A DNA stretch of 17,931 nucleotides, taken from assembly GCF_006345805.1 (NCBI RefSeq), contig NW_021824621.1, positions 1-17,931 of the forward strand, written 5' to 3'. The translations under genes were made by a program, and so were the position numbers. The stretch is from Octopus sinensis (lineage: Eukaryota). Shown here in pieces: positions 1 through 17,931 of the stretch (the first letter of the stretch is position 1; every line of letters begins with the position of its first letter). The notes under the pieces are model-generated. The model did no database searches. It had not been told where the DNA came from and saw only the letters and a list, made by a program, of their open reading frames with translations.

Positions 1-40
1 TAGCCATAACCTAATTCAAATTACATTTATATATATATAT

Positions 41-71
<31 letters not shown>

Positions 72-321
72 ACTATATATATTATTTTGCACATTACTTA
101 ATCATCGTTTATGTTTTTATCTTATATTTAATCTTTCTATAATATGTAATTTCTAGATGGTATAATTTAATTTTTCATTATTGAATAGATAAAAGGATTT
201 TTTTTTCTCATTTATATATATATATATATAGTTATATTTTGTGAAATTTGATTTAGTATTTCTAAATTGAATTTTTCCCTGTAAGTTTGGAATAATATTC
301 CCTCGTATATTATAATTATTT

Positions 322-342
322 GTAGTAGTAGTAGTAGTAGTT

Positions 343-387
<45 letters not shown>

Positions 388-439
388 TATGTGTGTGTGT
401 GTTGTGTGTGTGTGTGTGTGTGCGTGTGCATATGTGTGT
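322..439. repeat. Compound (GTA)n + (GT)n microsatellite
   Basis: Visible GTA run ~322-387 followed by GT run. Confidence 0.95.
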
Positions 440-514
440 CGACTAAAACCCTTCAAAGCGGAGCTCCGCTCAAATGACTGAAAAACTTAAATGAATAAAC
501 GAATATAAAAGAAT
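439..514 (+). mobile_element. Degenerate 3' tail fragment of SINE family 1
   Basis: gactaaa...gcgg.gctcc...tcaaatgactgaaa...ataaaagaat matches the tails at 1914-1978 and 6112-6175, with an internal deletion. Confidence 0.7.
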
Positions 515-1526
515 GTGTGTGTCTGTGTGTTTGCGCATATACAAAGCAGAAAATTCAGTATTTAATAAAACGAATCATAAATGTATGCCAACTCGCTGCC
601 TTACTCTGTACAATGTAATGAGCAATCTGTTCTTACTTTTGTTTACAACCTGTACTATTTGGATGTATGCACACAGACACGCACATATACAGGCGAACAG
701 ATTCATATTTGTAATATTACCGGCTCAAAGCAAGATTAAAATGTTATATAAAGACGTTGTTATCATTGCTAATTAGATTAACCGCCCTTTTCTTAGAGGA
801 AAAGAACAAGAGAAAGAGTAGCATCGTAAGTAGATTAATTTTCTTTTGGTACTACTGGCATTATACATTATCTACATTTGTTTTCATATACTCAAGAAAT
901 GGTAACGTATGCAGCATTTCATTAGGCACCACAGTCTTGCTCACAGCACTAAATATTTTAATAATGTTTTGCTACTTCACAAGCATAGAGTATTACATCT
1001 TGAACTCATTTTCCTTTAGATGTTAATATACCAGCAGTCAAACTCAGATTCTTATTACAAAAATGTCTTTCAAAACAGCGCTCTCTGTATTCGCAGAACC
1101 AACAAGTATACATTTGATACCATGTAATATTCACTGACTTTCATAAAAGCAAGGATCTGACCGCAGCAGGGAAATCACTACTAATAAAAACCATAATTCA
1201 CGTATATAACTCTCAAAACTTTAAAACTTGAAATTATTCAAGATATATATATATATATATATTATATATATAATATATATATTATATATATATCTAATAT
1301 GTTGTATATGTAAATACACACACACACACACACCCACACACACACACACCACACACACACACATATATTATAGATATATATATATATATATGTCTGTGTG
1401 TGTGTGTGCGTATTATACCGCGTTTTTTAACAAGGCACGTCCATAATAGATCATTTTTCAAAACCTATACCACCATGAATTTCTCTTCACGTTTGATTTA
1501 TGCTTTGTATATTATATAGATACACA

Positions 1527-1690
1527 GGCGTAGGAGTGGCTGTGTGGTAAGTAGCTTGCTTACCAGCCACATGGTTCCGGGTTCAGTCCCACTGTGTGGC
1601 ACCTTGGGAAAGTGTCTTCTACTATAGCCACGAGTTGACCAAAGCCTTGAGTGGATTTGGACGGAAATTATATATGTATATATATATATG

Positions 1691-1736
<46 letters not shown>

Positions 1737-1978
1737 TGTGTGTATGTGTGTGTGTGTGTGTATACGTTTGTGTGTCTGTGTTTGTCCCCCCCCATCATTG
1801 CTTGACAACCGATGCTGATGTGTTTACGTCCCTGTAACTTTGCGGTTCGGCAAAAGATACCGATAAAATAAGTATTACGCTTACAAAGAATAAGTCCTGG
1901 GGTGGATTTGCTTGACTAAAGGTGGCGCTCCAGCATGGCCACAGTCAAATGACTGAAAAGTGTAACAGAATAAAAGAG
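1527..1978 (+). mobile_element. Full-length tRNA-derived SINE (family 1, octopus-type) with internal AT/GT microsatellite
   Basis: A-box-like TGGCTGTGTGG 1537-1547; B-box-like GGTTCAGTCC 1580-1589; internal microsatellite ~1668-1762; 3' half ends ccagcatggccacagtcaaatgactgaaa...aataaaagag. Related fragments at 2999, 5990, 6249 and 9330. Confidence 0.9.
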
Positions 1979-2311
1979 ATATAGATCGTTGAATATATGA
2001 ACGTATATATATATATATCAAATGAAAGAGAGGGAACGAGATGGAGAAAGAAAGAAAGAAAAAAGAGAGTGAGAGAGAGAGACTAGGTGATAAATATCAT
2101 TCAAAACACAAATTACTCAATACAATTCACAATATGTGTTTTAATCTAGGCATAATACTATTTTTTATTTTGGTATTAGGTATACGTGTGAACCAACCGT
2201 TTTATTACTCTTCTGGCTCCATCAGTATGACGACATGAAATTTTACAGAAAAGAAATATTTACATACATTGATGTGTGTGTGTGTATATATAGATATATG
2301 TGTGTTTATGT

Positions 2312-2695
2312 GGAGGCGCAATGGCCCAGTGGTTAGGGCAGCGGACTCGCGGTCGAAGGATCGCGGTTTCGATTCCCAGACCGGGCGTTGTGAGTGTTTA
2401 TTGAGCGAAAACACCTGAAGCACCACGAGGCTCCGACAGGGATGGTGGTGATCCCTGCTGTACTCTTTCACCACAACTTTCTCTCACTCTTACTTCCTGT
2501 TTCTGTTGTACCTGTATTTCAAAGGGCCGGCCTTGTCACTCCTCTGTGTCACGCTGAATATCCCCGAAAACTACGTTAATGGTACACGTGTCTGTGGAGT
2601 GCTCAGCCATTACACGTTAATTTCACGAGCAGGCTGTTCCGTTGATCAACCGGATCAACCGGAAACCCCTCGTCGTCGTGAACGACGGATTGCTT
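2312..2695 (+). mobile_element. Full-length tRNA-derived SINE (family 2)
   Basis: A-box TGGCCCAGTGG 2322-2332; B-box-like GTTTCGATTCC ~2366-2376; 3' part recurs at 14386-14502; 9-bp internal duplication gatcaaccg at 2644-2661. Confidence 0.9.
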
Positions 2696-2740
2696 AAAGA
2701 TGTGTGTTTTGTGTGGGGATAGAGGGAAAGAGAAATAAAT

Positions 2741-2781
2741 ATATCTATGATATATATATATATATATGTATCTATATATAC

Positions 2782-2823
<42 letters not shown>

Positions 2824-2852
2824 GTTTATATATATGTATAATATATATACAT

Positions 2853-2897
<45 letters not shown>

Positions 2898-2988
2898 GTA
2901 TATATATATAAAGTTATATATATAATATATATAATATATATTTAGATAGATGGATAGATATATAGACAGATAGATAGCTATATACATA
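2741..2988. repeat. (AT)n / (ATAG)n compound microsatellite
   Basis: Seen directly. Confidence 0.95.
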
Positions 2989-2998
2989 CTCTTCTATT

Positions 2999-3195
2999 CT
3001 TTTCTTTTATTCTTTTACTTGTTTCAGTCATTTGACTGCGGCCATGCTGGAGCACCTCTTTAGTCGCACAAATCGACACACTACATATTCTTTATAAACG
3101 TAGTAATCATTCTATCGGCCTCTTTTGCCAAACCACTATGTTACGGGGACATAAGCACGCCAACATTAATGGGGCGACAAACACAGACACACAAA
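2999..3195 (-). mobile_element. 3' half of a SINE family 1 copy
   Basis: Reverse complement of the family 1 3' half (cagtcatttgactgcggccatgctggagcac...gacaaacacagacac). Confidence 0.9.
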
Positions 3196-3223
3196 TACAT
3201 ATATACATAATACATACGTATAC

Positions 3224-3261
<38 letters not shown>

Positions 3262-3280
3262 ATCTATATATACATATGTA

Positions 3281-3447
3281 AGTCCCGTGTGATTCGGGGT
3301 TAACCACAGTAAATAAGGTACTCAATACATAGTAGAGTAAAATTAATTTTTATATAGAAGGAGCTTCTACAGGACTAGAACTGTTTCATTCAAGAAAATC
3401 TTCAGGAGCTAGTTTTACAAGAAGTGTATTGATTGCCATTTATACAT
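3281..3447 (-). mobile_element. Penelope-like element terminal repeat (pLTR) fragment, family P1
   Basis: Direct repeat of 5623-5786 and contains a type I HHR. The PLE call is inferred from the HHR, TATA-like and polyA motifs and the tandem/inverted arrangement; no RT ORF is present. Confidence 0.65.
3362..3410 (-). ncRNA. Type I hammerhead ribozyme (P1 copy 1)
   Basis: Minus strand: AGCTC-CUGAAGA-UUUUCUUGAAU-GAAA-CAG-UUCUAGUC-CUG-UA^GAAGCU; stem I has one bulged A. Confidence 0.75.
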
Positions 3448-4362
3448 ATGTATATATATGCGTGTGTATGTGTATGTGTATATGTACATATACGTGTACG
3501 CTCGTATTTTTATGTATATGTAGGTACGTAGAGTTTATCTATGTGTGTATGTATTTGTACATGTGTGTAAGTATGTATAATATATATTGTGTGTTATATG
3601 TGTGTGTATTTATAATGTGTATATGTGTATATGTATATATATGTGTGTATATGTATATATATATATATAATGTTATATATATATATATATATAATCTATT
3701 ATATATATATATATCCTTTGTAAGTTTATATGTATGTATCCGTCTATATAATAGGTAACTGCACGTACATATAATTAATTTTATTTTTATTTTTGAGTAT
3801 GCATGTATGAATAACTGCGCGTATATATATTTTTACTATTTACTTATTTTTTGAGTATGCATGTAAGTATGAATATAAGGAGCACGTGTGTGTGTGTTGT
3901 ATGTGTAAGCATAGATATATGTATACTTTAACGCATGTGTGTACTTATGTGTATATATGGATGCGCGGTGTGTGTGTGTGTGTATGGGTACGCATGTACA
4001 TGTGTATGTGCGTGTGGTATGTGTATATGAGTATGTATGTATGTTTGTGCGTATATTTATATGTATGTATGTATATGTATGTGTTTTTGTATGTATATAT
4101 ATAATATATATATATGTGTGTGGGATGTGTATGTATGTATATGTATATGTGTATGTATTTGTATGTGTATGCATGCGCGTATATATATGTACGTATATGA
4201 TACGTGTGGCTGTGTGTATGTGAAATAAATGTATGTATGTATGGATGTATGGATGTATGTATGTATGTATACGTATGTATGTGTATGTGTGTATATGTAT
4301 GTATGTGTATGTGTGTATATATTATTATATATATATATGTATATGGTATATGTATGTATATG

Positions 4363-4393
<31 letters not shown>

Positions 4394-4860
4394 CTAATGT
4401 ATGTATATATATGTGAATATGTATATATATGTATATATATATATACATGTATGTATTTGTATGTAGGTGTATATGTATGTGTGTGATATTTTATTTATTG
4501 GTGTATATGTTATAGACTAGCTTCTAAGAGTGTATACATGAATCTGTAGGTACGCGTACGTATGTGTATATACGTGAATGTCTGTAGATGTATGTATGTA
4601 TGAATATAAACGCGTGCGTGCGTGTATGTGTATGAGTGTGCGAATGAGTGAGTGTACGTGCTAAAGAGTGTGCGTGAGTAAATGAGTGCTTGTTTTCCAG
4701 TACACAGATAAATGGACTGGCTGTCATAGCCAAGATGTTTGTGACCAGCGATCAAAGATAACAAAAGTAATAAATGAAGATAATAAAATTAAAATTAGGA
4801 ATGGGTCTGTATTTGTATGTGTATATATATGTGTGTTTGTGTAGGTATGCATAGGTACAC

Positions 4861-4896
<36 letters not shown>

Positions 4897-5240
4897 TATG
4901 TATATGTATGTGTGTGTATAGTGTGTGTATGTGTATATATGTGTATATAGGGACTAGTGTGCTGTGTGTGCATATGTGTGTGTGGATATGTGTGTGTATG
5001 CGTGTATGTGAGTATGTGTGTGTATGTATATATATTTTTCTGTGTGTATTGTATGTGTGGTCGTGTGTGTTATATACATGTGTGTATACGTGTATGCATG
5101 TGAGTGTGTGTATGTATACATATATGTGTATGTAGATATGTATATGTATGTGTAAGTGTAATATATATGTATATATGTGTGGTGTACGTGTGTGTGTATG
5201 TATATGTATATAGTTTGTATGGTGTGTTATATGTATACAT
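3448..5240 (+). repeat. Long aperiodic TG/TA-rich low-complexity tract
   Basis: Irregular mix of TG, TA and TATG units with G almost all on the + strand; 56-bp tandem duplication at 3756-3864; short unique island ~4685-4810. Confidence 0.9.
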
Positions 5241-5402
5241 ATTGCATAGGTATAAGTGAGAATCTCCTTACTTACCTAAAACTCTATTCCCTTTTTTTAT
5301 ATATATTTTTATATATTTTTTTATATATTTTTTTCATTTTTTTGTTTTATTTATTCTTATCTATCTAATTTAACACTGACTCCTTGACCACTCCCCCCCA
5401 AT

Positions 5403-5572
5403 ATGATATTTTGTCGCTATGCCTACCCCCAAAAAAGTCCCCCACCAACACCCCTTTAAACCTGCCTAATGTATAAATGGCAATACAATTCTTGTTAACT
5501 AGCTTCCTGAAGATTTCTCTTGAAGAAACAGTTCTAGTCCTGTAGAAGCTCCTTCTATTAATAAATCTAATT
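5403..5572 (+). mobile_element. P1 pLTR fragment, inverted relative to 5686-5850
   Basis: Reverse complement of 5686-5850; TATAAA 5472-5477, HHR 5501-5550, AATAAA 5560-5565. Confidence 0.65.
5501..5550 (+). ncRNA. Type I hammerhead ribozyme (P1 copy 2)
   Basis: Stem I AGCTTC 5501-5506 / GAAGCT 5545-5550; CTGAAGA 5507-5513; stem II TTC-TCTT-GAA; GAAA 5525-5528; stem III ACAG/CTGT; GUA triplet, predicted cut after 5544. Confidence 0.85.
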
Positions 5573-5622
5573 ATATATTACATATATATATATTATTCTA
5601 TATATATATAATATATAATATG

Positions 5623-5850
5623 TAGGTCCCGGGTGATCCGGGGTTAACCACAGTAAGTAAGGTACTCAATACATAGCAGAGTAAAATTAATTTATTATAT
5701 AGAAGGAGCTTCTACAGGACTAGTACTGTTTCATTCAGAGAATCTCAGGAAGCTAGTTAACAAGAATTGTATTGCCATTTATACATTTAGGCAGTTTAAA
5801 GGGGTGTTGGTGGGGGACTTTTTGGGGGTAGGCATAGCGCAAAATCTCAT
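5623..5850 (-). mobile_element. P1 pLTR fragment (longest copy)
   Basis: Contains TATA-like motif, HHR and AATAAA on the minus strand; its 3' end abuts the (AT)n tract at ~5575-5620. Confidence 0.65.
5707..5754 (-). ncRNA. Type I hammerhead ribozyme (P1 copy 3; core reads CUGA-GA)
   Basis: Minus: AGCUUC-CUGAGA-UUC-UCU-GAA-U-GAAA-CAG-UACUAGUC-CUG-UA^GAAGCU. N7 is missing, either a real mutation or a sequencing deletion. Confidence 0.7.
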
Positions 5851-5901
5851 GCTTGCCTGAAGATTTCTCTTGAATGAAACAGTACTAGTCCTGTAGAAGC
5901 T
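5851..5901 (+). ncRNA. Type I hammerhead ribozyme (P1 copy 4) in a short inverted pLTR piece (5851-5918)
   Basis: GCTTGC-CTGAAGA(5857-5863)-TTTCTCTTGAAT-GAAA(5876-5879)-CAG-TACTAGTC-CTG-TA^GAAGCT(5896-5901); stem I has one bulge. Confidence 0.8.
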
Positions 5902-5989
5902 CCTTCTATATAATAAATATATATATATATATATAGTATATATTATATATAATATACGTATACGTATGTATTACGTATATATTATTTGT

Positions 5990-6175
5990 TGTCTGTGTTT
6001 GTCGCCCCTTAATGTTGGCGTGCTTATGTCCCCGTAACATAGTTGTTTGGTAAAAGAGGCCGATAGAATGATTACTACGTTTATAAAGAATATGTGTGTG
6101 TCGATTTGTGCGACTAAGAGGTGCTCCAGCATGGCCGCAGTCAAATGACTGAAACAAGTAAAAGAATAAAAGAAT
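5990..6175 (+). mobile_element. 3' half of SINE family 1; inverted duplicate of 2999-3195
   Basis: Shares copy-specific changes with 2999-3195 that are absent from the 1527-1978 copy (tgtgcgactaa(a)gaggtgctcc; gcccc(a/t)taatgttggcgtgcttatgtcccc). Confidence 0.9.
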
Positions 6176-6248
6176 ATATATATATATATATATATATATA
6201 TCTACATATAAAGAAGCCTGTCGTACATATATATATACATATATATAT

Positions 6249-6402
6249 GACGGGCTTCTTTCAGTTTCCATCTACCAATTCCAGTCACAAGGCTTTGGTC
6301 AGCCCGAGCCTAGATTAGAAGACACTTGCCGAAGACGCCACAAGGTGGGACTGAACCAGGAACCATGTGCTTTGGAAGCTAGCTTCTTACCACACAACCA
6401 CT
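6249..6402 (-). mobile_element. 5' (tRNA-like head) half of SINE family 1
   Basis: Reverse complement of 1535-1665-like sequence (gtggttgtgtggtaagaagc...ggttcagtcccac...aaagaagcccgtc). Confidence 0.85.
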
Positions 6403-6668
6403 ACAAAGAGTAACAGAATCAACATCAATACTGTCTACGATAAACAGATAAATAGATAAATAATATAGGGAAACACAAATTCTTCGTGAGAAGTCTGGAG
6501 CTGAGGTCAGCAATATTATGTTAGTTTTGATATTCTATCTCTAAATGGAAGAGGACTATCGATTCCACTTGCATATGGTTTCCCATGGCTACAAGATTAC
6601 TGAGTTGAGAGGCTTGTTATATAACGTGCACTTGTATCCAGCGAGGTCACTTATGACGGGTCTCTCGA

Positions 6669-6691
6669 GATATATATATATTATGTTTATA

Positions 6692-6722
<31 letters not shown>

Positions 6723-6723
6723 G

Positions 6724-6787
<64 letters not shown>

Positions 6788-6790
6788 TTA
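6669..6790. repeat. (AT)n microsatellite
   Basis: Seen directly. Confidence 0.95.
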
Positions 6791-7711
6791 TATTCATACA
6801 TACAGTCATACGTACAGTCATACATGATATACCCTGTATATACATATCAACTTCTTCATTTCGACTCCAGCTTTCTTGCTTTGCTTTATGTATTTATAAT
6901 CTGGGGTTAATAAATTCGATAAAGATAATGGTAGTTATGAGTTCCGATATCAATAATAATGATGATGATGATAATAAGTGTTCGACATGATAAAATAACT
7001 ATAATGACCGTCAAACATGGCAAACATGGAGCTTAGAAAACGTGTGGTATGTAAAAATCTGATACACAAAGACTAAGGGATAACTGTCTCTACTACTGTG
7101 CGTGATGAAATTTGAACATCTAATTCAATTTTTAATTTCCGTTGGGAAATATATATTATATATGTTCCCCTTCTTTCTCTCTTCATCTGTCCCTTTCTCC
7201 TCTCTCTTGTGCTCACGTGACCAGCCAGCGACTACTGCCTTTTCGCATCCAGCAGTCATTGTGGCAACACGTATTTGTTTGTTCTTCGTGGCCTTAAGGC
7301 ACTCCTCCATAGCCATCCCTAAACTTAACTCGTCCTGTCGAAAAGACGCTTGTCCTGACGTCCTGGTTTTGTTATTATTGTTTTTACGTATTTTGTATTC
7401 TTATTCGTGCTATCATTATTGTTTTTACGTATTTTTGTATTTTTATTCGTGTAACATCGTCCGTTTTCCGTCCCTGTGTTGTATACATTCGAGGCTTTCT
7501 TCCAAGGAATCTAATGCGCTTGGCTTAGATTTCCCTTGGGGGCTGCCCATATCGGAGCAATCTCAAGATTAATCAGCCGAAATTGCGAAGATGATCCGGT
7601 TCTTGACTGATGATTGAGGGCTCGAATGTCCCCGTGGGTGTTTTGTGTCGTCTTCGAATGTTTCACGTTCTTGTCCAAGTTTGTATATTTTTTTACTTTT
7701 ACCACACACAC

Positions 7712-7745
<34 letters not shown>

Positions 7746-7911
7746 ACAAAGATAAATGCGATACAATAAAATTAATTATAATCCCGGTGTACCAGTACAC
7801 GCCATATATTATACATATATCATTACATTCAAGGCGAAGAGTGCACTAGATACACAATAGCTGGATAATTTAGTGAGATGAGAAGTTAAAAACTTTTACA
7901 AACTTAACTTT

Positions 7912-7984
7912 TCTTATACTGCAGTTTCGCCAAATTCAGTAATAAAAATAGTATTTATTTACTCAGGCTGGCTCTTCAGTAAGA
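7912..7984 (-). ncRNA. Type I hammerhead ribozyme, retrozyme unit A1
   Basis: Minus: UCUUA-CUGAAGA(7979-7973)-GCCA...UGGC-GAAA-C-UGCA-GUA^UAAGA; predicted cut between 7917 and 7916; stem I extended by UUAAC/GUUAA. Confidence 0.9.
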
Positions 7985-8310
7985 TTCCTGTTAATGATGG
8001 AAAGACCATATCATAGATCCTGTGCGTCTATCGAAATGCTCTTTCTAAACTATTCAAAACACTGCGCAGACTCCGAACAAACCCGACAAAATAGGGGATT
8101 GTGGTATATCGTCTAACGGTCAGAAATTTATCGAGAGAATATGTAAACAAAGATAAATGCGATACAATAAAATTAATTTAATCGCCGGTGTACCAGTACA
8201 CCCATATATATACATATATCATTACATTCAAGGCGAAGAGTGCACTAGATACACAATAGCTTGATAAATTTAGTGAGATGAGAATTAAAAACTTTTACAA
8301 ACTTAACTTT

Positions 8311-8333
8311 TCTTATACTGCAGTTTCGCCAAA
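8311..8333 (-). ncRNA. 3' half of a hammerhead (unit A2), truncated in stem II
   Basis: Minus: UGGC-GAAA-CUGCA-GUA-UAAGA; CUGAAGA half replaced by (AT)n. Confidence 0.8.
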
Positions 8334-8353
8334 TATATATATATATAATATAT

Positions 8354-8392
<39 letters not shown>

Positions 8393-8552
8393 AAATTCAA
8401 AATGCGATAAAAAAATTAATTATTATCGCTGGTGTTTCTAGCACAGGCCATATTTATTCATATATAAGAACATTAAAGCGAAGTATGTACTAGAAACACA
8501 GAAGCTTGATAAATTTAGTGAATGAAGATAAAAACTTTTACTAACTCTGTTC

Positions 8553-8627
8553 ATCTTAGACTGCAGTTTCGCCTTTTTCAGCAATAAAAATAATATTTAT
8601 TTACTCAGGTAGGCTCTTCAGTAAGAT
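8553..8627 (-). ncRNA. Type I hammerhead ribozyme, retrozyme unit B1
   Basis: Minus: AUCUUA-CUGAAGA(8621-8615)-GCCU...AGGC-GAAA-C-UGCA-GUC^UAAGAU; predicted cut between 8559 and 8558. Confidence 0.92.
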
Positions 8628-8948
8628 TCCTGTTATTATGAAGCGCAACTCGATAGACACATCGTGCGTCTACTAATTTGCTCTTTCTACTAATCAGATC
8701 ACTGCGCAGACGCAGAACGAACCCGACAAACTAGGGATTTCTGGTATATAGTCTAACGCTCAAAATTTATCGATAAATATGTAAACAATTCAAAATGCGA
8801 TAAAATAAAATTATTATTATCGCTGGTGTTTCTAGCACAGGCCATATATAATTCATATATAAGTACATTAAAGGCGAAGTATGTACTAGAAACACAGAAG
8901 CTTGATAATTTAGTGAAATGAAGATAAAAACTTTTACTAACTCTGTTC

Positions 8949-9023
8949 ATCTTAGACTGCAGTTTCGCCTTTTTCAGCAATAAAAATAATATTTATTTAC
9001 TCAGGTAGGCTCTTCAGTAAGAT
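8949..9023 (-). ncRNA. Type I hammerhead ribozyme, retrozyme unit B2
   Basis: Identical to B1; CUGAAGA at 9017-9011; predicted cut between 8955 and 8954, 396 nt from the B1 site. Confidence 0.92.
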
Positions 9024-9329
9024 TCCTGTTATTATGAAGCGCAACTCGATAGACACATGTGCGTCTACTAATTTGCTCTTTCTAACTAATCAGATCACTG
9101 CGCAGACGCAGAACGAACCCGACAAACTAGGGATTTCTGGTATATAGTCTTACGCTCAAAATTTATCGAGAAATATGTAAACAAATTCAAAATGCGATAG
9201 AATAAAATTAATTATTATCGCTGGTGTTTCTAGCACAGGCCATATATTATTCATATATAAGTACATTAAAGGCGAAGTATGTACTAGAAACACTGAAGCT
9301 TGATAAATTTAGTGAAATGAAGATAAAAA

Positions 9330-9447
9330 CTTTGGTCGGCCCGAGGCTATAGCAGAAGACACTTGCCCAAGATGCTACGCAGTGGGACTGAACCCGGAAC
9401 CATGTGGCTGGTTAGCAAGCTACTTACCACACAGCCACTCCTGCGCC
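9330..9447 (-). mobile_element. tRNA-like head of SINE family 1, 3'-truncated, fused to the retrozyme array
   Basis: Reverse complement ggcgcaggagtggctgtgtggtaag...gggttcagtcccac...cgggccgaccaaag, matching 1527-1645. Confidence 0.9.
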
Positions 9448-9479
9448 TGTAACACACAACTCAGGCTGAGTAATCGAAA

Positions 9480-9760
9480 GAGGTTGTCCAATAAGGATAT
9501 CCATCTATTTTCTCTGCCTAATATTCCTGAGAGAACCATGTAGTTAGACTCGTCAGGAACCTCTGCTATGTGGTCCACTCGTGTGACCAGCTGAGGATAT
9601 AGATGTAATCAACCATCTCCCTCATGCTCTACTCATATGTCTCCTGCCGGCTTCCTCGGCTTCAAGAATCTGTCTTATGATATTTTCTTGTGACATCGTA
9701 ATCACATGTCCTTGATACCGGAGCTGTGACCTCTCAATGCAGACATGAGAAGTTAGTTTT
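9480..9760 (-). pseudogene. Decayed RTE-clade LINE ORF C-terminal fragment
   Basis: 9738-9610 translates IERSQLRYQGHVITMSQENIIRQILEAEEAGRRHMSRA*GRWL, then after a frameshift DYIYILSWS. This resembles the RTE-type LRWxGHVxRM...RQI...GxRxxGRPxxRWxD tail. Contains a stop and a frameshift. Confidence 0.75.
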
Positions 9761-11634
9761 TTTTTCTTTATCTAAATCAAAATATCATTATACATATAAA
9801 AGAACTAGTAGCATAAGCCCTGTAATGCACATAAGCAAAACAACTAAAAATCTTCAAACTTGTTATGAAAATCGTTTATAGCTCCGAAATATCAATAACA
9901 TTCTCAGAATTCAGACTAACGCTTCAGAACCAGAAAATAATTGACTCCTGATAATTTTCCGGCCATATAAAAATCATAACTGCCATTCTTGTCAAAGGAA
10001 ATCCTGATCTATATAAGCTAGAGTACATAACAATCGATATATTAGCAAATATCTACAATGAAACACAACACACTATAACAACTAACACACAGACATTGTT
10101 TCTACTCTAATCTAACGAAACTAAAATGTATTTTGTCTCTCTGAATATGAGACGTATCAACTTTATAAAGTCTAATCCGATACATCTACCAACTCCTCTT
10201 TATTTTATTCACACGTTCAACCTTACTTTATCCTACATAACACCACCACCACCACCGTATGAAAATTCCTTTATATATATTTCCATGGATAAAGGCAATT
10301 CTGCATGGTTGACAAACATGCCAGATATAACCTCTAATATTACAATCTGCAATCTTAAAAAATAAACAGAAACTGCAAGGTAATAACAATGGCAACAACA
10401 AACAAAATTTGAGCTCGTGCTACATTAACAAAGTACCTGCGAAGGTCATGGAAGGAAATGCTTTGCGACAATATAATTCCATGTTTCTGGTTAATGTAAG
10501 TCTCATGGTTGTTTTCCAACGCGTCACTCCCAAAGAGTCTTCAATTACTAGCTCAGAGACAGTCTCTTCACACATGGATTATACTAAATTGGCCTCAGGT
10601 TTTCTGAAGTATCCAGCTAAATACTATTACTTCAATATATTTCATATTTCGATCATGCTCCTCTTTCCTTTTTTGTTACCTTTATTGTATCTAACATTCC
10701 AGAATCTGCAGTAGACACATCACATACAACTTCCATCCCAAGAATGCAATCCTGTTGAATTTTCTTTCAGAGTATGTTTCGCTTCATATGTTGACTGAGA
10801 GAATTTTATTCTGAACATCAAATGCATCAATTTTCCAAAACATGTATGGCCTGATACTACTATTGGCAACCATCCCTTACTTCATTTTCTGTATAATCCA
10901 TACAAGAATCCCTGTAATATTTTGAAAAGTCTTATATTATTTTTACCACAGGAATATTAATATCTATATTAAGCCTTCAGTTATTAGCTTTTCTTTATTT
11001 GCATTTTTGCGATTGATAGATTATATAGCAATAATAACTCTCAAAGTGCAGACCTATTTAAATTAATATACATATATACATACACCCAAATACATAATCA
11101 GACACATACTTATAAAAATAGATACAAACGTGCGTGTGTGTGTGCGTAGGGGAAATGCATTTATAAAACGCTTTCTGTTGTTATTTTGCGTTTTCGACAG
11201 GAAGAAGGCAACTCTATACATGACCTTCGTAGACACTTCACGAAGAGTAAAGGATAGAAGCGGTTAGTTCTCTTCAACATCTGGAAGTCGATGTCTGCAG
11301 GAAAAAAGCCAGTGGGCGGCAATAAAAACATCCGCAGACAAAACACTTAAATCTTGTAGACAGGTGATTCTAACGAGAAATAAACATAATGATGTTCTCA
11401 TGAATGTCAACTAAAATGAAAACACCATTAACTTAATACACCTTAAAATCATTTTATCCATAATTTTACTCCAGCGGTAATAAACCTAGAAACTATAATG
11501 ATCTAGATTAAACACAGATAGAGCATAAAAGAAAATGAAGAAGCCTCTACAGAAAAAAAAAGAGAATTATTGTTAAAAATTTATGCTAAAAGGAAGGCTC
11601 AATATGAAAAGTAGAGTTTTTCATACCTACCTAC

Positions 11635-11957
11635 ATCCGAGATCCCCCTTCGGTCACGACATAGACCATGGGATTGCATCTAGAAAGTTACCCTCCCAGG
11701 CACAAGTCCGGGCAAGGTTGTTTATGGAAGACCAGTAGTCGCCCATGCATACTGGCCTCCCCTCTCCACGTCACCAGTCTTATCGAAGTAAGGCAAGGGC
11801 CGATGCAGCTTGGCACCTGTGACGTCGCAACTCATTTCTACGGCTGGAGCAACGTGAAATAAAGTATCTTGCTCAAGAACACAGCACGCAGCCCGGTCCG
11901 GGATTCGAGCTCACAACCTCACGATCGTAAGCTCGACGCTCTAACCACTGAGCCATG
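11635..11957 (-). mobile_element. Full-length tRNA-derived SINE (family 3, CORE-like middle) with 13-bp target site duplication
   Basis: A-box TGGCTCAGTGG (11955-11945); B-box-like GCTCGAATCC (11910-11901); gtgttcttgagcaagatactttatttcac middle; TSD CATACCTACCTAC at 11622-11634 and 11958-11970. Confidence 0.85.
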
Positions 11958-11970
11958 CATACCTACCTAC

Positions 11971-12066
11971 CTACATACATATACATACATACATACATAC
12001 ATACATGCATGCATACATACATACATACATACATACATACATACATACATACATACATACATACAT
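11971..12066. repeat. (TACA)n microsatellite
   Basis: Seen directly. Confidence 0.95.
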
Positions 12067-12489
12067 AGGGAAAAGAGAACATTTACGGCGAATTAATGCA
12101 GAACTTTTACTCTGACTATGAATTCTCCTATGTAACCATCATCATAGGTGCATTAGTTTATGTACCAACGAATTTTACAGATTTCAGATAGCGGTTTTGG
12201 TATTGCTGGGGTACTGCCTTTAGAATGATTGTTTTCTTTTTATTTCACATACACCTCCCGGCTTTCTCCCTGGAATTGTTTCTGACGAAGTAGCAAGCTG
12301 GACAGAGCGACACGTCTTTGTGTTTTCTGCCACGTTGTGGTTTCATCTGATATTTCAGATAAAAAAATGTTCTAAATATTCATTGAAAACACCCACATTA
12401 CCACTTCGCAGGTTTGAGAGGCTGTTTCGCAAAGTGTTGAATAGTTGTGGGGCCTAGAAAACTAAACTGTCAGAGTATTGGATTATAAT

Positions 12490-12560
12490 GAATTGCAGGC
12501 TCAGAATCAATTTTCCGAACTTATGATCTTCAGTTCATCACCTTAAACACTAGGCCACAT
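12490..12560 (-). mobile_element. Possible highly degenerate tRNA-SINE head
   Basis: Minus: gtggcctagtgtttaaggtgatgaactgaagatcataag...ttgattct gives weak A/B-box-like motifs only. Confidence 0.35.
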
Positions 12561-13163
12561 CCTTTCACACATATAAGGAGATAGCTAAACACACACACAC
12601 ACGCATGCCCCACAAACACACACACACACTCACACATACATGTACACATATACATATATGTATGCATACGTGAATGCGTCTACATGTTTGTGAGTTTGAG
12701 AATGTATGCGCAATTATAACACAATTTTGGCATTAGTCATCATTATACTTTAACGAAGTTCCAGAAAGTCGGTTATTCAATTTAGTATTAATCTTCTTTT
12801 GGTATTTTTCATATTTGCTATATATTATTGCTCGTTAACTCTCGACGTTTCTTTTCTGTCTATAGTTACAAAGGTAACTGAAAACTCGGTTAGATTTTAG
12901 TTTCCTTTAGGATATGAAATACATATATATATATAAAGTCAAGGTAGAAAATGCTAAAATAATTTTATAAAAACCAAGTTCTGGTTTCAGTCATTGAGAC
13001 TTCTTCAACTGTAAGTATGGAAAAGAATTAAATTTTGGAAAAATTAAAGGAAAAGCTTTTTAAAAGCTATATATTATTGCTCGTTAACTCTCGACGTTTC
13101 TTTTCTGTCTATAGTTACAGAAGCAACTTAAAATTCGCTTAGATTTTAGTTTCCTTTAGGATA

Positions 13164-13198
<35 letters not shown>

Positions 13199-13202
<4 letters not shown>

Positions 13203-13510
13203 ATCCAAACAAGAAAACACAAAAAAACACAACAACGCGAGGACGTGGAACAAATATAGTATTATTGGACGCTCAGGAAAGAAGGGAAGAAGGAGGGTTT
13301 AACGTTTCGAGCGGAGCTCTTCGTCGGAAACATAGGAGAAGGAAAGATCCAGAGAAGGGAAGACAGAGGGGAAAAAATCGCCAACGGTACATACGAGGTC
13401 ACATTTTGAAAGACCGGAAGGAGAAAGGGTGACGAAAGATGTTTTCAAAGACAGAAGAGTATTCAAAGACAGAAGAGTAGTATGGTCAGAGACAGCGGAA
13501 TGTAGGAGGG
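13199..13510 (-). mobile_element. Penelope-like element 3' end, family P2
   Basis: TLSPSGLS at 13430-13407 resembles the TLxPxGLN C-terminus of PLE GIY-YIG domains; minimal HHR downstream; 3' end at (AT)n; 18-bp internal duplication 13444-13479. Confidence 0.6.
13297..13331 (-). ncRNA. Minimal type I hammerhead ribozyme with U4C core variant
   Basis: Minus: GUUU-CCGACGA-A-GAGC-UCC-GCUC-GAAA-CG-UU^AAAC; stem I 4 bp, stem II 4 bp, stem III a single pair around palindromic ACGU. Confidence 0.7.
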
Positions 13511-13514
13511 GGAA

Positions 13515-14285
13515 TGTGTGTGTAAGTGTGGATGTGTGCGTGCGCGGAGGACTGCGTGTGCGTGTGTGTGTGTATGTGTGCAATGATAACACGTGTGTGT
13601 GTGTGTATGTTTTGTTTGTAGTGTGTGTGTGTGTATGTGTGTGTTCGTGTGTGTATGTGTGTGTTCGTGTGTGTATGCGTAGAGTTTGGGGTGTGGCGAA
13701 TAACTGTGTTTTACTTAGTGTATGTGTGCGTGTGTGCTTGTACGTGCGTATGTGTGTATATATATGTATGTATAATTGTGTGCGTGTATGTATGATTGTG
13801 TGCCGTGTGTATGGGATGTATGTGTGGGTTCATTTGTGCGTGTGTGTGTGTGTGTATGTATATGCGTGCGTGTCGTATGTGCGTGTAGTTGTGTGTGCGT
13901 TCGTATGTGTGTGTGTAAGCGTATATGGATGTATATGCGTGTATCCGTGGGGATGTGAGTTTTGGGTGTGTGCATTGGTGTGCGTGTGTGCGTGCGTATG
14001 TTTTTGTGTGCGTATGTGTGTGTGTGTGTGTGTCTGTGCCTGTGTGTATACGTATGTGTATGTGTGTGTGCGCGTGTAGGCATATATTGTGTTTATGTAT
14101 ATGTATCGGTGTGTATGTGAATTTGTGTATGCGTGTGTGTGAGGGTTTTTTTGGAGTTGTGTGGGCGTAATGTGCGTGTGTGGGCGTAATGTGCGTGTGT
14201 GGGTGTGTGTATATGTGTGGAAGTATGTGTGCATGTATGTTGTATGTGTGTGGAGTGTTGGAAGTATGTGTGTGTATGTGTTTCT
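13515..14285 (+). repeat. Long aperiodic TG-rich tract
   Basis: Irregular TG/TGCG/TATG units, G-rich on the + strand. Confidence 0.9.
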
Positions 14286-14385
14286 GTATAAGGACAAAAT
14301 ATTTATAAAAAATATATATATATATGGAAAAAATGTCAAGGTAGAAAATGCTAAAATAATTTTATAAAAAACATTTCAGTTCTGT

Positions 14386-14502
14386 GTTAAGAGTACACGT
14401 TTCTCTGGAGTGCTGAGCCACTTGCACGTTAATTTCACGAGGAAGCTGTTCCGTCGATCGTATCAGCTGGGACTCTCGTCGTCGCAACCGACGGAGTGCT
14501 TC
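14386..14502 (+). mobile_element. 3' fragment of SINE family 2
   Basis: Matches 2576-2695 (gtacacgt...ggagtgct.agcca...cacgttaatttcacgag...ctcgtcgtcg...gacgga). Confidence 0.85.
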
Positions 14503-14708
14503 GTTTATATGTGTATACAAATAATTTGGACTAGAGGAAACTGGTTAAACCTCTTCGTCAGCGAATTCAAAGTTAATCATCCACATGAATGGTTGTATGT
14601 AACAGAGTTCTGTGTTATCTATGAACCTTCAAAAGACAAAAACTAATTGTTGATGAGCAACTCTGAGTAGTGATTACGTGAATCTTAAGATTTGAATGGA
14701 AATATAGT

Positions 14709-14955
14709 GGAGGCACGTGGATTAGTGGTTACGGGTGTTGGACTCATGATTGTAATATTCTGGACTCGATTCCCAGACCGGGAGACGCGTTGTGTTCTTG
14801 AACAAAACACTTCATTTAACGTTATTCCAGTTCACTCAGCTGCAAAACTGAGTAACCCTGCGACGGACCGGCGTGTTGTCCAGGTTGAGGAATTTGTACG
14901 TCATGTAAACCGGGAAACCGGTCCTTACGAGTCAGCATGTCTCAAGAAGATAACC
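14709..14955 (+). mobile_element. tRNA-derived SINE (family 4, CORE-like middle)
   Basis: A-box-like TGGATTAGTGG 14718-14728; B-box-like GACTCGATTCC 14763-14773; gtgttcttgaacaaaacacttcatttaacg middle shared with 11635-11957; T-rich end. Confidence 0.8.
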
Positions 14956-15022
14956 TTTTTTTTTATTACATTAATGAAAATATATTCTATTTCATGTACT
15001 GTGAACTCATTTTCCATCTGTT

Positions 15023-15023
<1 letters not shown>

Positions 15024-15058
<35 letters not shown>

Positions 15059-15080
15059 CACACAACACACACACACACAC

Positions 15081-15120
<40 letters not shown>
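15024..15120. repeat. (CA)n microsatellite
   Basis: Seen directly. Confidence 0.95.
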
Positions 15121-15214
15121 TACCACATACAAAAGTATAAACATCTGGTCGAAAGTTTCAGCCCTTGAGTCGCTTTTATTTTTTACTTCCTACCGATTAA
15201 GAAATATTGGATTT

Positions 15215-15350
15215 TACTTTTGGATCAAAGCCAGCGTTTCGGAGAGAAGGGGGCTAAGTCGGTTACGTCGAGCCTACTGCTAAGCCGATACTTATTTTCT
15301 TGACAGCGAAAGCATGAAGGGCAAAGTCGACCTCGGCAAAATTTGAACTG
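15215..15350 (-). mobile_element. Degenerate SINE fragment
   Basis: Minus: gttcaaattttgccgaggtcgactttgcccttcatgctttcg...aaaataagtatc, a B-box plus central domain I recall from abundant octopus SINEs; not database-checked. Confidence 0.6.
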
Positions 15351-15636
15351 CCAATGTCGATAAAAAAACATTAAACATATACAGGTTCCCGCGTGCTCTA
15401 ACAAAATTGTGTGAGTTGTGTGCGTGTGTGTGCGTATGTGAGAGAGGGAGAGAGAGTGTGTGTGTGTGTTTGTGTGTACACGCATGCTTGAGTGTGTTTT
15501 CCTTTTTTTTTTTTATCTTGGAGTCTGTCTGCGAAGCATGTATGATCACTGAGCTAGGAAACTAATCAGAAGCCTATTTCCAATTAGGCCTGATAGCATC
15601 TTGCCAAATTGGCCACAATCCAGTATTTTCATTTTC

Positions 15637-15668
15637 ATCATCATCATCATCATCATCATCATTATTAA

Positions 15669-15708
<40 letters not shown>

Positions 15709-15836
15709 TGCTGGTATTATTGCTGATGTTATTGTAGATGATATTCTCGCAGCTAACCTCACCAGCACCCATCCACCAACAATCCACCACCACCACCGCC
15801 ACCACCAACCACCACCACCACCACCGCCGCCGCCAT
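15637..15836. repeat. Compound trinucleotide microsatellites (ATC, ATT, CCA)
   Basis: Seen directly. Confidence 0.9.
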
Positions 15837-15998
15837 TATCACGAGCGCTTACACTGACATACATGCTCATTTTTATATATATAAGGAAGGCTGTATGTTA
15901 GTCATACGTTATAGATCTGATGCTAACCGGAAATCGCTTTATGTAACTCTATCCATCAGGTCTTGGACTCAGTAGATGATGGCAGTGATTGTGCTGGT

Positions 15999-16049
15999 AG
16001 CAGCAACAACAACAACAACAACAGCAGCACCAGCAACAGTAGCAGCAGC

Positions 16050-16093
<44 letters not shown>
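15999..16093. repeat. (CAA/CAG)n + (GTA)n microsatellite
   Basis: Seen directly. Confidence 0.9.
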
Positions 16094-16429
16094 AAGCTGA
16101 TGATCGTCATGGCAGACCTTGTATCAATCAGCATTGGCTACGTTGATAGTGATGGTGGCTGTCTGTTGTAAGAAGCGATGGTTGTTCTGTTGCGTGCTTA
16201 TAGTTCGTAGCAGTCACATGGACAGTTGCGCCAATGGCACTGATGTCCTCTTAATTGTTATATGGGTGACGGTGGCGCCACTACATTCAATATCTTTGCT
16301 GTAGTCATGTCGGCTGTTGAGAAACTGCAATATTTTTTTCTAAAATTAGTAAATCTAATAAAGCCAGTTACTGGATTTTTTCCTGTTTGTGTGTATGAGG
16401 TTATGTACGTACGTCCGTACATACTTACG

Positions 16430-16677
16430 TGTGCATGTATGTTTGTATGTATGTATAAATATATATATACACACACATACATATATACGTATATACATTG
16501 CACGTATATATATATAAGCATGTATAAGCACACACACACAAACACACACATGCACATGCATATATATATATATATATATACATACATATATACATACATA
16601 TCATTACACGTAGATACACATGTTAAGCACACACCACATGCGCATGCATATATATATGTACATATATATATATATAC

Positions 16678-16726
<49 letters not shown>

Positions 16727-16916
16727 TATATACATATATATATACATATATAATATATATATAATATTATATACATATATATATATATATATACATATAT
16801 ATATACATATATATATACATATATATTATATATATATATATATATATTATATCTATATATATATTATATATATGTCAAGATGAAGCAATCATCATATATT
16901 ATATATATAATGTATG

Positions 16917-16948
<32 letters not shown>

Positions 16949-16955
16949 ATATATA
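16430..16955. repeat. AT/CA compound microsatellite
   Basis: Seen directly. Confidence 0.9.
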
Positions 16956-17004
16956 TCTTTTTGCTTTAGCTATCCCATTACTAACATATCGTAGAAAGAT
17001 GTTG

Positions 17005-17450
17005 ATGATAATGATGATGATACTGGGATTTTTGTTGTTGTTGTTATTGTTGTTGTTGTAATGGTTGTGATCGCTTGCATCTTCTTGTGCCAAAACAACT
17101 TTGAACAACATCATCTACAAAAATAACGCCAGCAGCATCATCATTTTTAGCATCAGCGTCGTCGTCGTGGTGCTCCACCTCTTCCTCCTTCACCTCCTCC
17201 TCGTTCTCCTTCTCGTCCCCCTTTATCATCATCATTATCATCATATTATAATCACCAATAAAGAGCAGCCGCAACAACAACAACAACGACAACGACAAGA
17301 CGAGAAACACCAGCAATAAGAACACAAACCACAAACACTACCACCACCACCACCACCACCACAACAACAACAACAACAAAATAAACAGAAGCAACAAGAA
17401 CAGCAGCAGCAGTAGCAGCAACAGCAGCAGTAGCAGCAGTGGCAGCAATG
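17005..17450. repeat. Mosaic of trinucleotide microsatellites (GAT, GTT, ATC, CAA, CCA, GCA)
   Basis: Seen directly; both orientations are mixed, which argues against a coding exon. Confidence 0.85.
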
Positions 17451-17797
17451 AGCAGAAATAGGAGTAACAAGATTACTATCGACGACAACACACATGGCAA
17501 TCGATGGCTTCTGTCTACACTGAACCAGGCAGAAAATGGAAGTAAAAATACAGTCCAGTTGTTTCCGTTGCATAACAACGAGTTAATTGTCGCATTGGAG
17601 AAAGAATAGCTTCTGCCATTATCCTATATATAACTATGTTATTATCAGATACCTTATTTTAATGTGGTTGGAGGAGAATACATTGATCTTCTTTCCCTTT
17701 CGTAATTTCTGCATTTACTGAGGTCACAATGGCTTTCTTCTGTGAGAATCATTTCCAGAAATTTCGTTGCAAACGGAATATCTACGAATCGCTCAGT

Positions 17798-17823
17798 TTC
17801 TTTTCTTTCTTTCTTTCGTTCGT

Positions 17824-17855
<32 letters not shown>

Positions 17856-17931
17856 TCCTTCTTTCCTTCTTTCTTTCTTTCTTTTTTCTTTTTTTTCTTT
17901 CGTTCTTTCTTTCTTTTGTTCTTTCTTTCTT
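17798..17931. repeat. (TTTC)n microsatellite
   Basis: Seen directly; runs to the window end. Confidence 0.95.

Follow-up and report, generated by a model that had tools for sequence, protein, structure and literature searches.

Retrozymes of the metazoan non-LTR class (LTR, long terminal repeat) carry type I hammerhead ribozymes (HHRs) in AT-rich, non-coding tandem repeats with units of 150-450 bp, arranged as dimers to multimers with a GC content below 45-50%, and they are multi-copy, dispersed through their genomes and found together with Penelope-like elements (PLEs) (Cervera & de la Peña 2020, PMC7229834). Their circular RNAs (circRNAs) have a stable, highly self-paired predicted structure, circularisation is attributed to RtcB, and the amphibian hammerheads among them depend on dimers (PMC7229834); for the retrozymes of Mytilus and other invertebrates a circRNA intermediate closed by RtcB has been proposed (PMC7229834, PMC7761336). 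The mobilisation step is described in reviews as undeduced from retrozyme sequences (PMC7761336). PLEs show an insertion bias for (TA)n microsatellites (PMC8557442), and PLE activity has been described as cleaving AT-rich DNA and initiating reverse transcription at fixed internal RNA sites (PMC11167929). On the basis of vertebrate genomes, a 2026 preprint derives retrozymes from PLE pseudo-LTRs and favours local amplification by unequal crossing-over (bioRxiv 10.64898/2026.07.22.740005). Here we analyze a candidate retrozyme in a DNA stretch of 17,931 nt (contig NW_021824621.1, positions 1 to 17,931, referred to below as the window), in which positions 7746-9333 consist of head-to-tail units of ~396-399 nt. 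The sequence indicates that this repeat is probably a genuine hammerhead-bearing element of retrozyme type, belonging to the metazoan non-LTR class; the steps at the RNA level and of integration are less certain than this class assignment. The class is already known and is widespread among metazoan phyla, molluscs included, and the locus is a further example of it and no new kind of element.

The original prediction had described one array of tandem units of about 400 nt. The unit length stands: Tandem Repeats Finder (TRF) reported 8379-9333 with period 396, 2.4 copies and 96% matches, a repeat search of the window gave start-to-start spacings of 394-401 nt, and comparison by blastn of the 396-nt monomer (8559-8954) with the whole 17.9-kb window returned 8955-9333 (97% identity), 8371-8558 (92%), 7918-8303 (81%) and 7725-7904 (80%), with no match outside 7725-9333. 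The single array gives way to two adjacent arrays of different subfamilies (~80% identity between them), array A of 589 bp (~1.5 units) and array B of 944 bp (~2.4 units). The predicted cuts in the A units (7917/7916 and 8316/8315) would release a monomer of 399 nt and those in the B units (8955/8954 and 8559/8558) one of 396 nt; the B cut sites and the 396-nt monomer had been proposed beforehand, and the cmscan alignment arrives at the same positions. The parts of the locus are the following.

7700..7745, no strand: (CA)n(TA)n microsatellite adjoining the left end of array A, read from the sequence.
7746..7916, minus strand: A0, partial unit at the RNA-sense 3' end of array A, ending ...UUGU and then (TA)n; 99.4% identical to A1.
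7917..8315, minus strand: A1, complete 399-nt monomer of subfamily A, bounded by two predicted cuts after GUA; ~80% identical to B1.
7911..7985, minus strand: hammerhead of A1; RF00163 21.2 bits, E 0.0035; descriptor match.
8316..8334, minus strand: A2 stub, the 19-nt 3' part of a hammerhead (GGCGAAACUGCAGUA), 100% identical to its A1 counterpart and followed by (AT)n.
8333..8389, no strand: (AT)n microsatellite between arrays A and B (TRF period 2, 28.5 copies), abutting the start of array B.
8390..8558, minus strand: B0, partial unit at the RNA-sense 3' end of array B, with the same end motif as A0; 98.8% identical to B1.
8559..8954, minus strand: B1, complete 396-nt monomer, the predicted linear or circular RNA, bounded by both B cut sites; GC 0.33.
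8553..8627, minus strand: type I hammerhead B1; RF00163 36.3 bits; predicted cut after GUC, 8559/8558.
8955..9333, minus strand: B2, 379 nt of a unit at the RNA-sense 5' end of array B; 98.7% identical to B1.
8949..9023, minus strand: type I hammerhead B2, identical in sequence to 8553-8627; RF00163 36.3 bits; predicted cut 8955/8954.
8630-8660 and 9026-9056 (B) and 7988-8018 (A), minus strand: 25-nt block of 20% identity between A and B, alignment columns 301-325.

The full units had been predicted to carry a type I hammerhead on the minus strand, and comparison with the Rfam hammerhead models bears this out. Two matches to RF00163 (type I), at 8553-8627 and 8949-9023, score 36.3 bits each, where the gathering score is 34 bits, with a window-wide E of 5e-6, and the third hammerhead, in A1 (21.2 bits), has an intact core (CUGAAGA and GAAA, with the triplet GUA) and a helix I of 5 bp plus a terminal A.A mismatch. 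A fourth hammerhead, in A2, proved to be just a 19-nt 3' stub (8316-8334). The cmscan alignment gives the B hammerhead a helix I of AUCUUA/UAAGAU, CUGAAGA as C3-A9, the pair G10.1:C11.1, G12-A14, and a helix III of A15.1:U16.1 and C15.2:G16.2 closed by UGCA, with GUC as the cleavage triplet; because it places cleavage after GUC, the cut sites fall at 8559/8558 and 8955/8954. Helix I is open, and helix II forms a hairpin of ~50 nt, unusually long and interrupted by internal loops. The core (C3 U4 G5 A6 N7 G8 A9, G12 A13 A14, A15.1:U16.1 and H17) is present in all three complete copies, H17 being C in B and A in A. A hammerhead descriptor (CTGANGA, 20-50 nt, GAAAC, 4-8 nt, GTH) matched just the three complete sites, and in 200 dinucleotide shuffles it matched 0.03 times on average, with no shuffle reaching three. 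The hammerhead occurs on one polarity only (minus), and Rfam scans of the window gave no ribozyme family match on the plus strand. The RF00163 consensus, which looks newt-like, aligns here end to end.

Identities counted from an alignment of all units in RNA sense separate the two arrays, since A0, A1 and A2 are mutually 99-100% identical and B0, B1 and B2 98-99%, with A versus B at ~80%. Conservation between A and B is highest in the hammerhead with its 5' flank (UAACAGGA), at 84-92% identity, and in the 25 nt directly upstream of this conserved flank the identity is just 20% (columns 301-325); this block has the appearance of a domain that is hypervariable or was replaced. A block of 20% identity is not what a local duplication followed by uniform drift would leave, and for this reason A and B look like two subfamilies. 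The two hammerheads differ at 9 of 75 positions, none of them in the core, and their helices II differ by one compensatory change of U:A to A:U (10.4/11.4) and one of U:A to U:G, pair changes that appear compatible with the hammerhead fold.

Because helix III consists of one C:G pair and a palindromic tetraloop, a single copy of the ribozyme is expected to cleave weakly, and a double hammerhead efficiently. The ACUGCAGU segment is self-complementary, its UGCA loop being palindromic, and in a cofold calculation two copies of the B hammerhead adopt the canonical double hammerhead as their minimum free energy (MFE) structure (-33.5 versus 2 x -14.2 kcal/mol), while the MFE structure of a 516-nt dimeric transcript holds an inter-hammerhead helix III of 8 bp and one helix I in trans. 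For the single hammerhead the active fold is ~6 kcal/mol less stable than a misfold that pairs the CUG of the core with the CAG of helix III. By these calculations the monomer is predicted to be inactive, and dimeric RNA to adopt a textbook double hammerhead. In both A and B, UAAC/GUUA can lengthen helix I past an internal loop, with a differing sequence in between; helix II is long and has internal loops, and therefore the classical contacts between loop 1 and loop 2 cannot be assumed.

Several features of the locus can be seen in the sequence itself. These are the ribozyme motifs, the tandem architecture, homogeneous units within each array, a start by (TA)n that both arrays share, and the predicted dimer fold. 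The locus has the sequence-level features that define non-LTR retrozymes (PMC7229834), namely a type I HHR whose core is complete, head-to-tail monomers with a length inside the range of 150-450 bp, low GC (0.33 in B1 and 0.34 in A1), no LTRs, no conserved or recognisable open reading frame (ORF) and a hammerhead on one polarity, and the earlier proposal that it represents such a family is upheld at this level.

The boundaries of the arrays provide the information on how they may have been inserted. Both arrays start at one unit motif (ATATGTAAAC), to ≤10 nt, directly after (TA)n, which adjoins the array starts from 7745 downward (A) and from 8389 downward (B). The RNA-sense 3' end of both is ...AUCGCAUUU(AUCU/UGAA)UUUGU(U), at the same unit position, and complete units continue past this position with UACAUAU, which is able to pair with a (TA)n primer. 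The far ends differ: array A stops in helix II of the hammerhead (8334), where the A2 stub is cut off by (AT)n at the RNA-sense 5' truncation point of the array, and array B stops 20 nt into the unit (9333), where B2 joins an element resembling a short interspersed nuclear element (SINE) through a shared CTTT (9330-9333). The best explanation of the locus would be that a non-autonomous, non-coding retroelement was inserted twice, at neighbouring sites. The simplest reading of its ends would be two retro-insertions into a (TA)n tract, possibly a SINE tail, with the same internal cDNA start and arbitrary ends, and the (CA)n(TA)n tract at 7700-7745, possibly the tail of the SINE-like element, is the candidate integration target. 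The common start after (TA)n, seen in two arrays, fits target-primed, internally initiated reverse transcription by a PLE. A more specific scenario can be put forward tentatively and with more doubt than belief: the arrays would be independent integrations, in which cDNA was primed at nicked (TA)n from the fixed UACAUAU site, continued in rolling-circle fashion for 1.5-2.4 turns, and was joined at its far end by the CTTT microhomology (9330-9333).

We infer transcription, cleavage, ligation and the identity of the reverse transcriptase, and the cycle that we propose is conditional throughout. Transcription of the minus strand through an array would give a multimeric RNA, in which neighbouring hammerheads could pair through the self-complementary ACUGCAGU into a double hammerhead. 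The monomer would then be circularised by a host tRNA ligase of the RtcB type, and the hammerhead in the monomer or circle would favour the inactive fold, protecting the circle. A PLE reverse transcriptase might nick AT-rich or (TA)n DNA and start cDNA internally, in the UACAUAU region of the RNA paired with (TA)n; more than one turn round the circle, or along a multimer, would yield a tandem insertion whose start is fixed and whose end is arbitrary. The circle junction GUC/UAAGAU is the same as the genomic head-to-tail junction, and reads across the 8559-8954 junction therefore cannot separate circles from multimeric read-through.

Some of our results weigh against the assignment to a mobile retrozyme. 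The A1 hammerhead, at 21.2 bits (E 0.0035 in a narrow scan), lies below the gathering score and was missed in wider scans. In a covariation test 247 of 500 shuffles reached the observed value, and with two distinct sequences the test is statistically uninformative. Two arrays show the fixed start, whose motif is TA-rich in its own right. The B1 circle has an MFE of -82.6 kcal/mol with ~62% of its bases paired, yet the circular MFE is not significantly below that of dinucleotide shuffles (z = -1.5 for B and -0.7 for A), so that a strongly structured, rod-like circle is unsupported. Ten stop-free six-frame segments of the window, picked by eye, gave no Pfam domain and no PLE reverse transcriptase (RT) or GIY-YIG domain. 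Two exact patterns derived from the hammerhead had 0 matches in metagenome contigs (both patterns), in viral sequences (the first) and in prokaryotic genomes (the second).

The unexceptional fold of the monomer would also suit a satellite-type origin, according to which a single old insertion, such as the terminal repeat of a PLE truncated at its 5' end, was amplified by unequal crossing-over with duplication of the block and its (TA)n flank, leaving fossil arrays in which the hammerhead is a passenger. Local amplification is the route that the 2026 preprint proposes for retrozyme arrays (bioRxiv 10.64898/2026.07.22.740005), a duplicated block of (TA)n plus array would likewise give equal start positions, and the ATATGTA motif of the unit could seed a microsatellite in place. 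We nevertheless consider this origin unlikely, as it needs strong homogenisation within arrays of 1.5 and 2.4 units (98-100%) and none between neighbours (80%), and the 25-nt block at 20% identity far exceeds uniform drift. The middle (AT)n has unit column 387 on its left and column 176 on its right, so that an expansion of (AT)n in place needs an additional deletion of ~190 nt. The hammerhead, with cores intact in all three complete copies, also shows the highest conservation between A and B. Two retro-insertions of a non-autonomous element remain our preferred reading.

It is far less probable that the repeat is the pseudo-LTR region of an autonomous PLE, with the hammerhead belonging to that element and not to a separate non-autonomous retrozyme. 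For the pseudo-LTRs of PLEs, type I hammerheads are described whose helix III is weak and which work as dimers (PMC4209133), and PLEs insert as partial tandems with a (TA)n bias (PMC8557442), but the period here is 396-399 nt with no coding capacity, whereas the repeat unit in PLE tandems includes an ORF of 2.5-4 kb, and no RT or GIY-YIG remnant was found in the window among the ten segments compared with Pfam. The hammerhead is not the 'minimal' PLE variant, because its helix II has ~50 nt and its helix I 6 bp. That an ordinary AT-rich minisatellite resembles a hammerhead by chance might be suspected in a window rich in simple repeats, which yields many spurious sub-threshold Rfam matches and in which another repeat carries CUGAAGA...GAAAC by chance. 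This explanation is effectively refuted by an Rfam match above the curated threshold (E 5e-6), by three descriptor matches where 0.03 are expected, and by the presence of 13 of 13 core positions, three helices, a correct H17 and a compensatory change, all kept at 20% divergence between subfamilies.

The window is AT-rich and crowded with microsatellites and interspersed repeats, and no credible protein-coding ORF was found in it; three of its ORFs have no record as called genes in an exact look-up. The longest ORF of the unit has 75 aa (79 aa from stop to stop), is interrupted in subfamily A and had no homologue among 5.8 billion proteins, in agreement with the earlier statement that the monomer holds no convincing ORF. 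The units are simple direct repeats without LTRs, with no formal scan made for a primer-binding site (PBS) or polypurine tract (PPT).

The SINE-like element that bounds array B belongs to a repeat with three copies in the window, at 1524-1644 (plus sense) and at 6293-6402 and 9330-9450 (minus sense), which are 81-91% identical. The copy at the junction is the following.

9334..9450, minus strand: SINE-like interspersed repeat at the edge of array B; identity 91% with 1524-1640 and 81% with 6297-6402.

The two relatives of this copy extend ~25-30 nt further at the 3' end. A (TA)n(TG)n tail (1669-1785) follows the copy at 1524, and a counterpart to it, (CA)n(TA)n, is found beyond the arrays at 7700-7745. 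Insertion of the SINE-like element into the array was considered and judged less likely than the reverse, because the copy at the junction is without its own 3' end and the (CA)n(TA)n tract beyond the arrays resembles the tail of 1524-1785. A switch of template during reverse transcription, from retrozyme RNA to SINE RNA, is possible as well. By eye, the repeat has a box A-like TGGCTGTGTGG and a box B-like GGTTCCGGGTTCAGTCC; neither ARAGORN nor Rfam called it a tRNA, its ORF had no protein homologue, and its core sequence had no literal match in the literature text.

Other repeats in the window are given for completeness. A second hammerhead-like string (CUGAAGA...GAAAC with flanks AGCUUC/GAAGCU), at 5507-5536, 5857-5887 and 3376-3405, was rejected as a chance resemblance; it sits in the arms of foldback inverted repeats resembling a miniature inverted-repeat transposable element (MITE), for helix II it could offer 3 bp and a U.U mismatch, and the best 150 of 187 Rfam matches (E up to 10) do not include it. 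The foldback or MITE-like element occupies 5403-5850, with arms 80% self-complementary over ~450 nt, and related pieces lie at 2918-3447 and 5851-6248. Most of the 187 sub-threshold Rfam matches are to mir-297, mir-466, mir-3149, mir-1277 and similar families, at sites such as 1283-1425, 3185-3290, 3440-3690, 4030-4630, 4810-5250, 12000-12066 and 16400-16960. Among the matches listed, those to microRNA families are well below their gathering scores and fall largely on hairpins of (TG)n/(TA)n microsatellites, and microRNA genes were rejected as artefacts of low-complexity sequence. Two more interspersed repeats are unclassified: a direct repeat of 119 nt (12817-12935 and 13066-13184) is 93% identical with its copies 249 nt apart, and an inverted pair of 113 nt (11844-11955 versus 14718-14830) is 73% identical. 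On the minus strand of 9625-9771 there is a stop-free translation (…RYQGHVITMSQENIIRQILEAEEAGRR…) with no match in Pfam and a vague likeness to the C-terminal region of ORF2 proteins from non-LTR retrotransposons.

If confirmed in the genome and the transcriptome, the element would add one more lineage, possibly the cephalopods, to those with ribozyme-processed small circular RNAs; a text search of the literature found no paper naming a cephalopod retrozyme, an absence that is weak evidence. Apart from the boundary architecture, the locus is a matter of routine repeat annotation. Side-by-side arrays of two subfamilies with a shared start and different ends make the PLE rolling-circle model testable on array boundaries genome-wide, and if the pattern were true genome-wide, it would tie animal retrozymes mechanistically to PLE reverse transcriptases that target (TA)n and initiate internally. 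The obligate double-hammerhead design, documented mainly in amphibians, would, if true here, extend to an invertebrate lineage.

Among the systems described, the LTR retrozymes of plants (PMC4918200) resemble our element in being non-autonomous and processed by hammerheads, with a circRNA intermediate that is proposed here. They differ in their type III hammerheads, LTRs, PBS, PPT, high GC, circles of 600-1000 nt and mobilisation by Ty3/Gypsy elements, none of which appears to apply to the locus. Amphibian satellite 2 and the axolotl elements Rtz_331 and Rtz_353 (HHR_Amex1 and HHR_Amex2; PMC7229834) are closer, as they too consist of low-GC tandem units (~330-350 nt there) that carry a type I hammerhead on a single strand, and the newt and axolotl hammerheads share a helix III of one base pair plus a palindromic tetraloop (GCGC in newts, UGCA here; PMC7229834). 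There is no sequence similarity to the amphibian elements outside the core, the unit here is longer (396 nt), and a helix II hairpin of ~50 nt takes the place of their short stem with loop 2. The axolotl has ~126,000 motifs (PMC7229834), whereas the arrays here are very short, and the host here is apparently an invertebrate.

The retrozymes of Mytilus galloprovincialis, the coral Acropora and rotifers (PMC7229834, PMC7761336) are likewise short, AT-rich, non-coding tandems with type I hammerheads, arranged as dimers to multimers, and the mussel hammerheads are, like ours, without the canonical loop-loop nucleotides. For the invertebrate hammerheads a more stable helix III and good cleavage by single motifs have been reported, whereas dimer dependence is predicted here; expression and circularity have been shown there and are predicted here. 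The hammerheads of PLE pseudo-LTRs (PMC4209133, PMC8557442, PMC11167929) belong to elements that encode an RT/GIY-YIG ORF, in contrast to a unit that is here ten times shorter and has a hammerhead that is not of the minimal type. They resemble it in being type I with a weak helix III, in acting as dimers, in their partial tandems and in their AT-rich or (TA)n targets, and the fixed internal start of PLE reverse transcription (PMC11167929) fits the start of both arrays by (TA)n.

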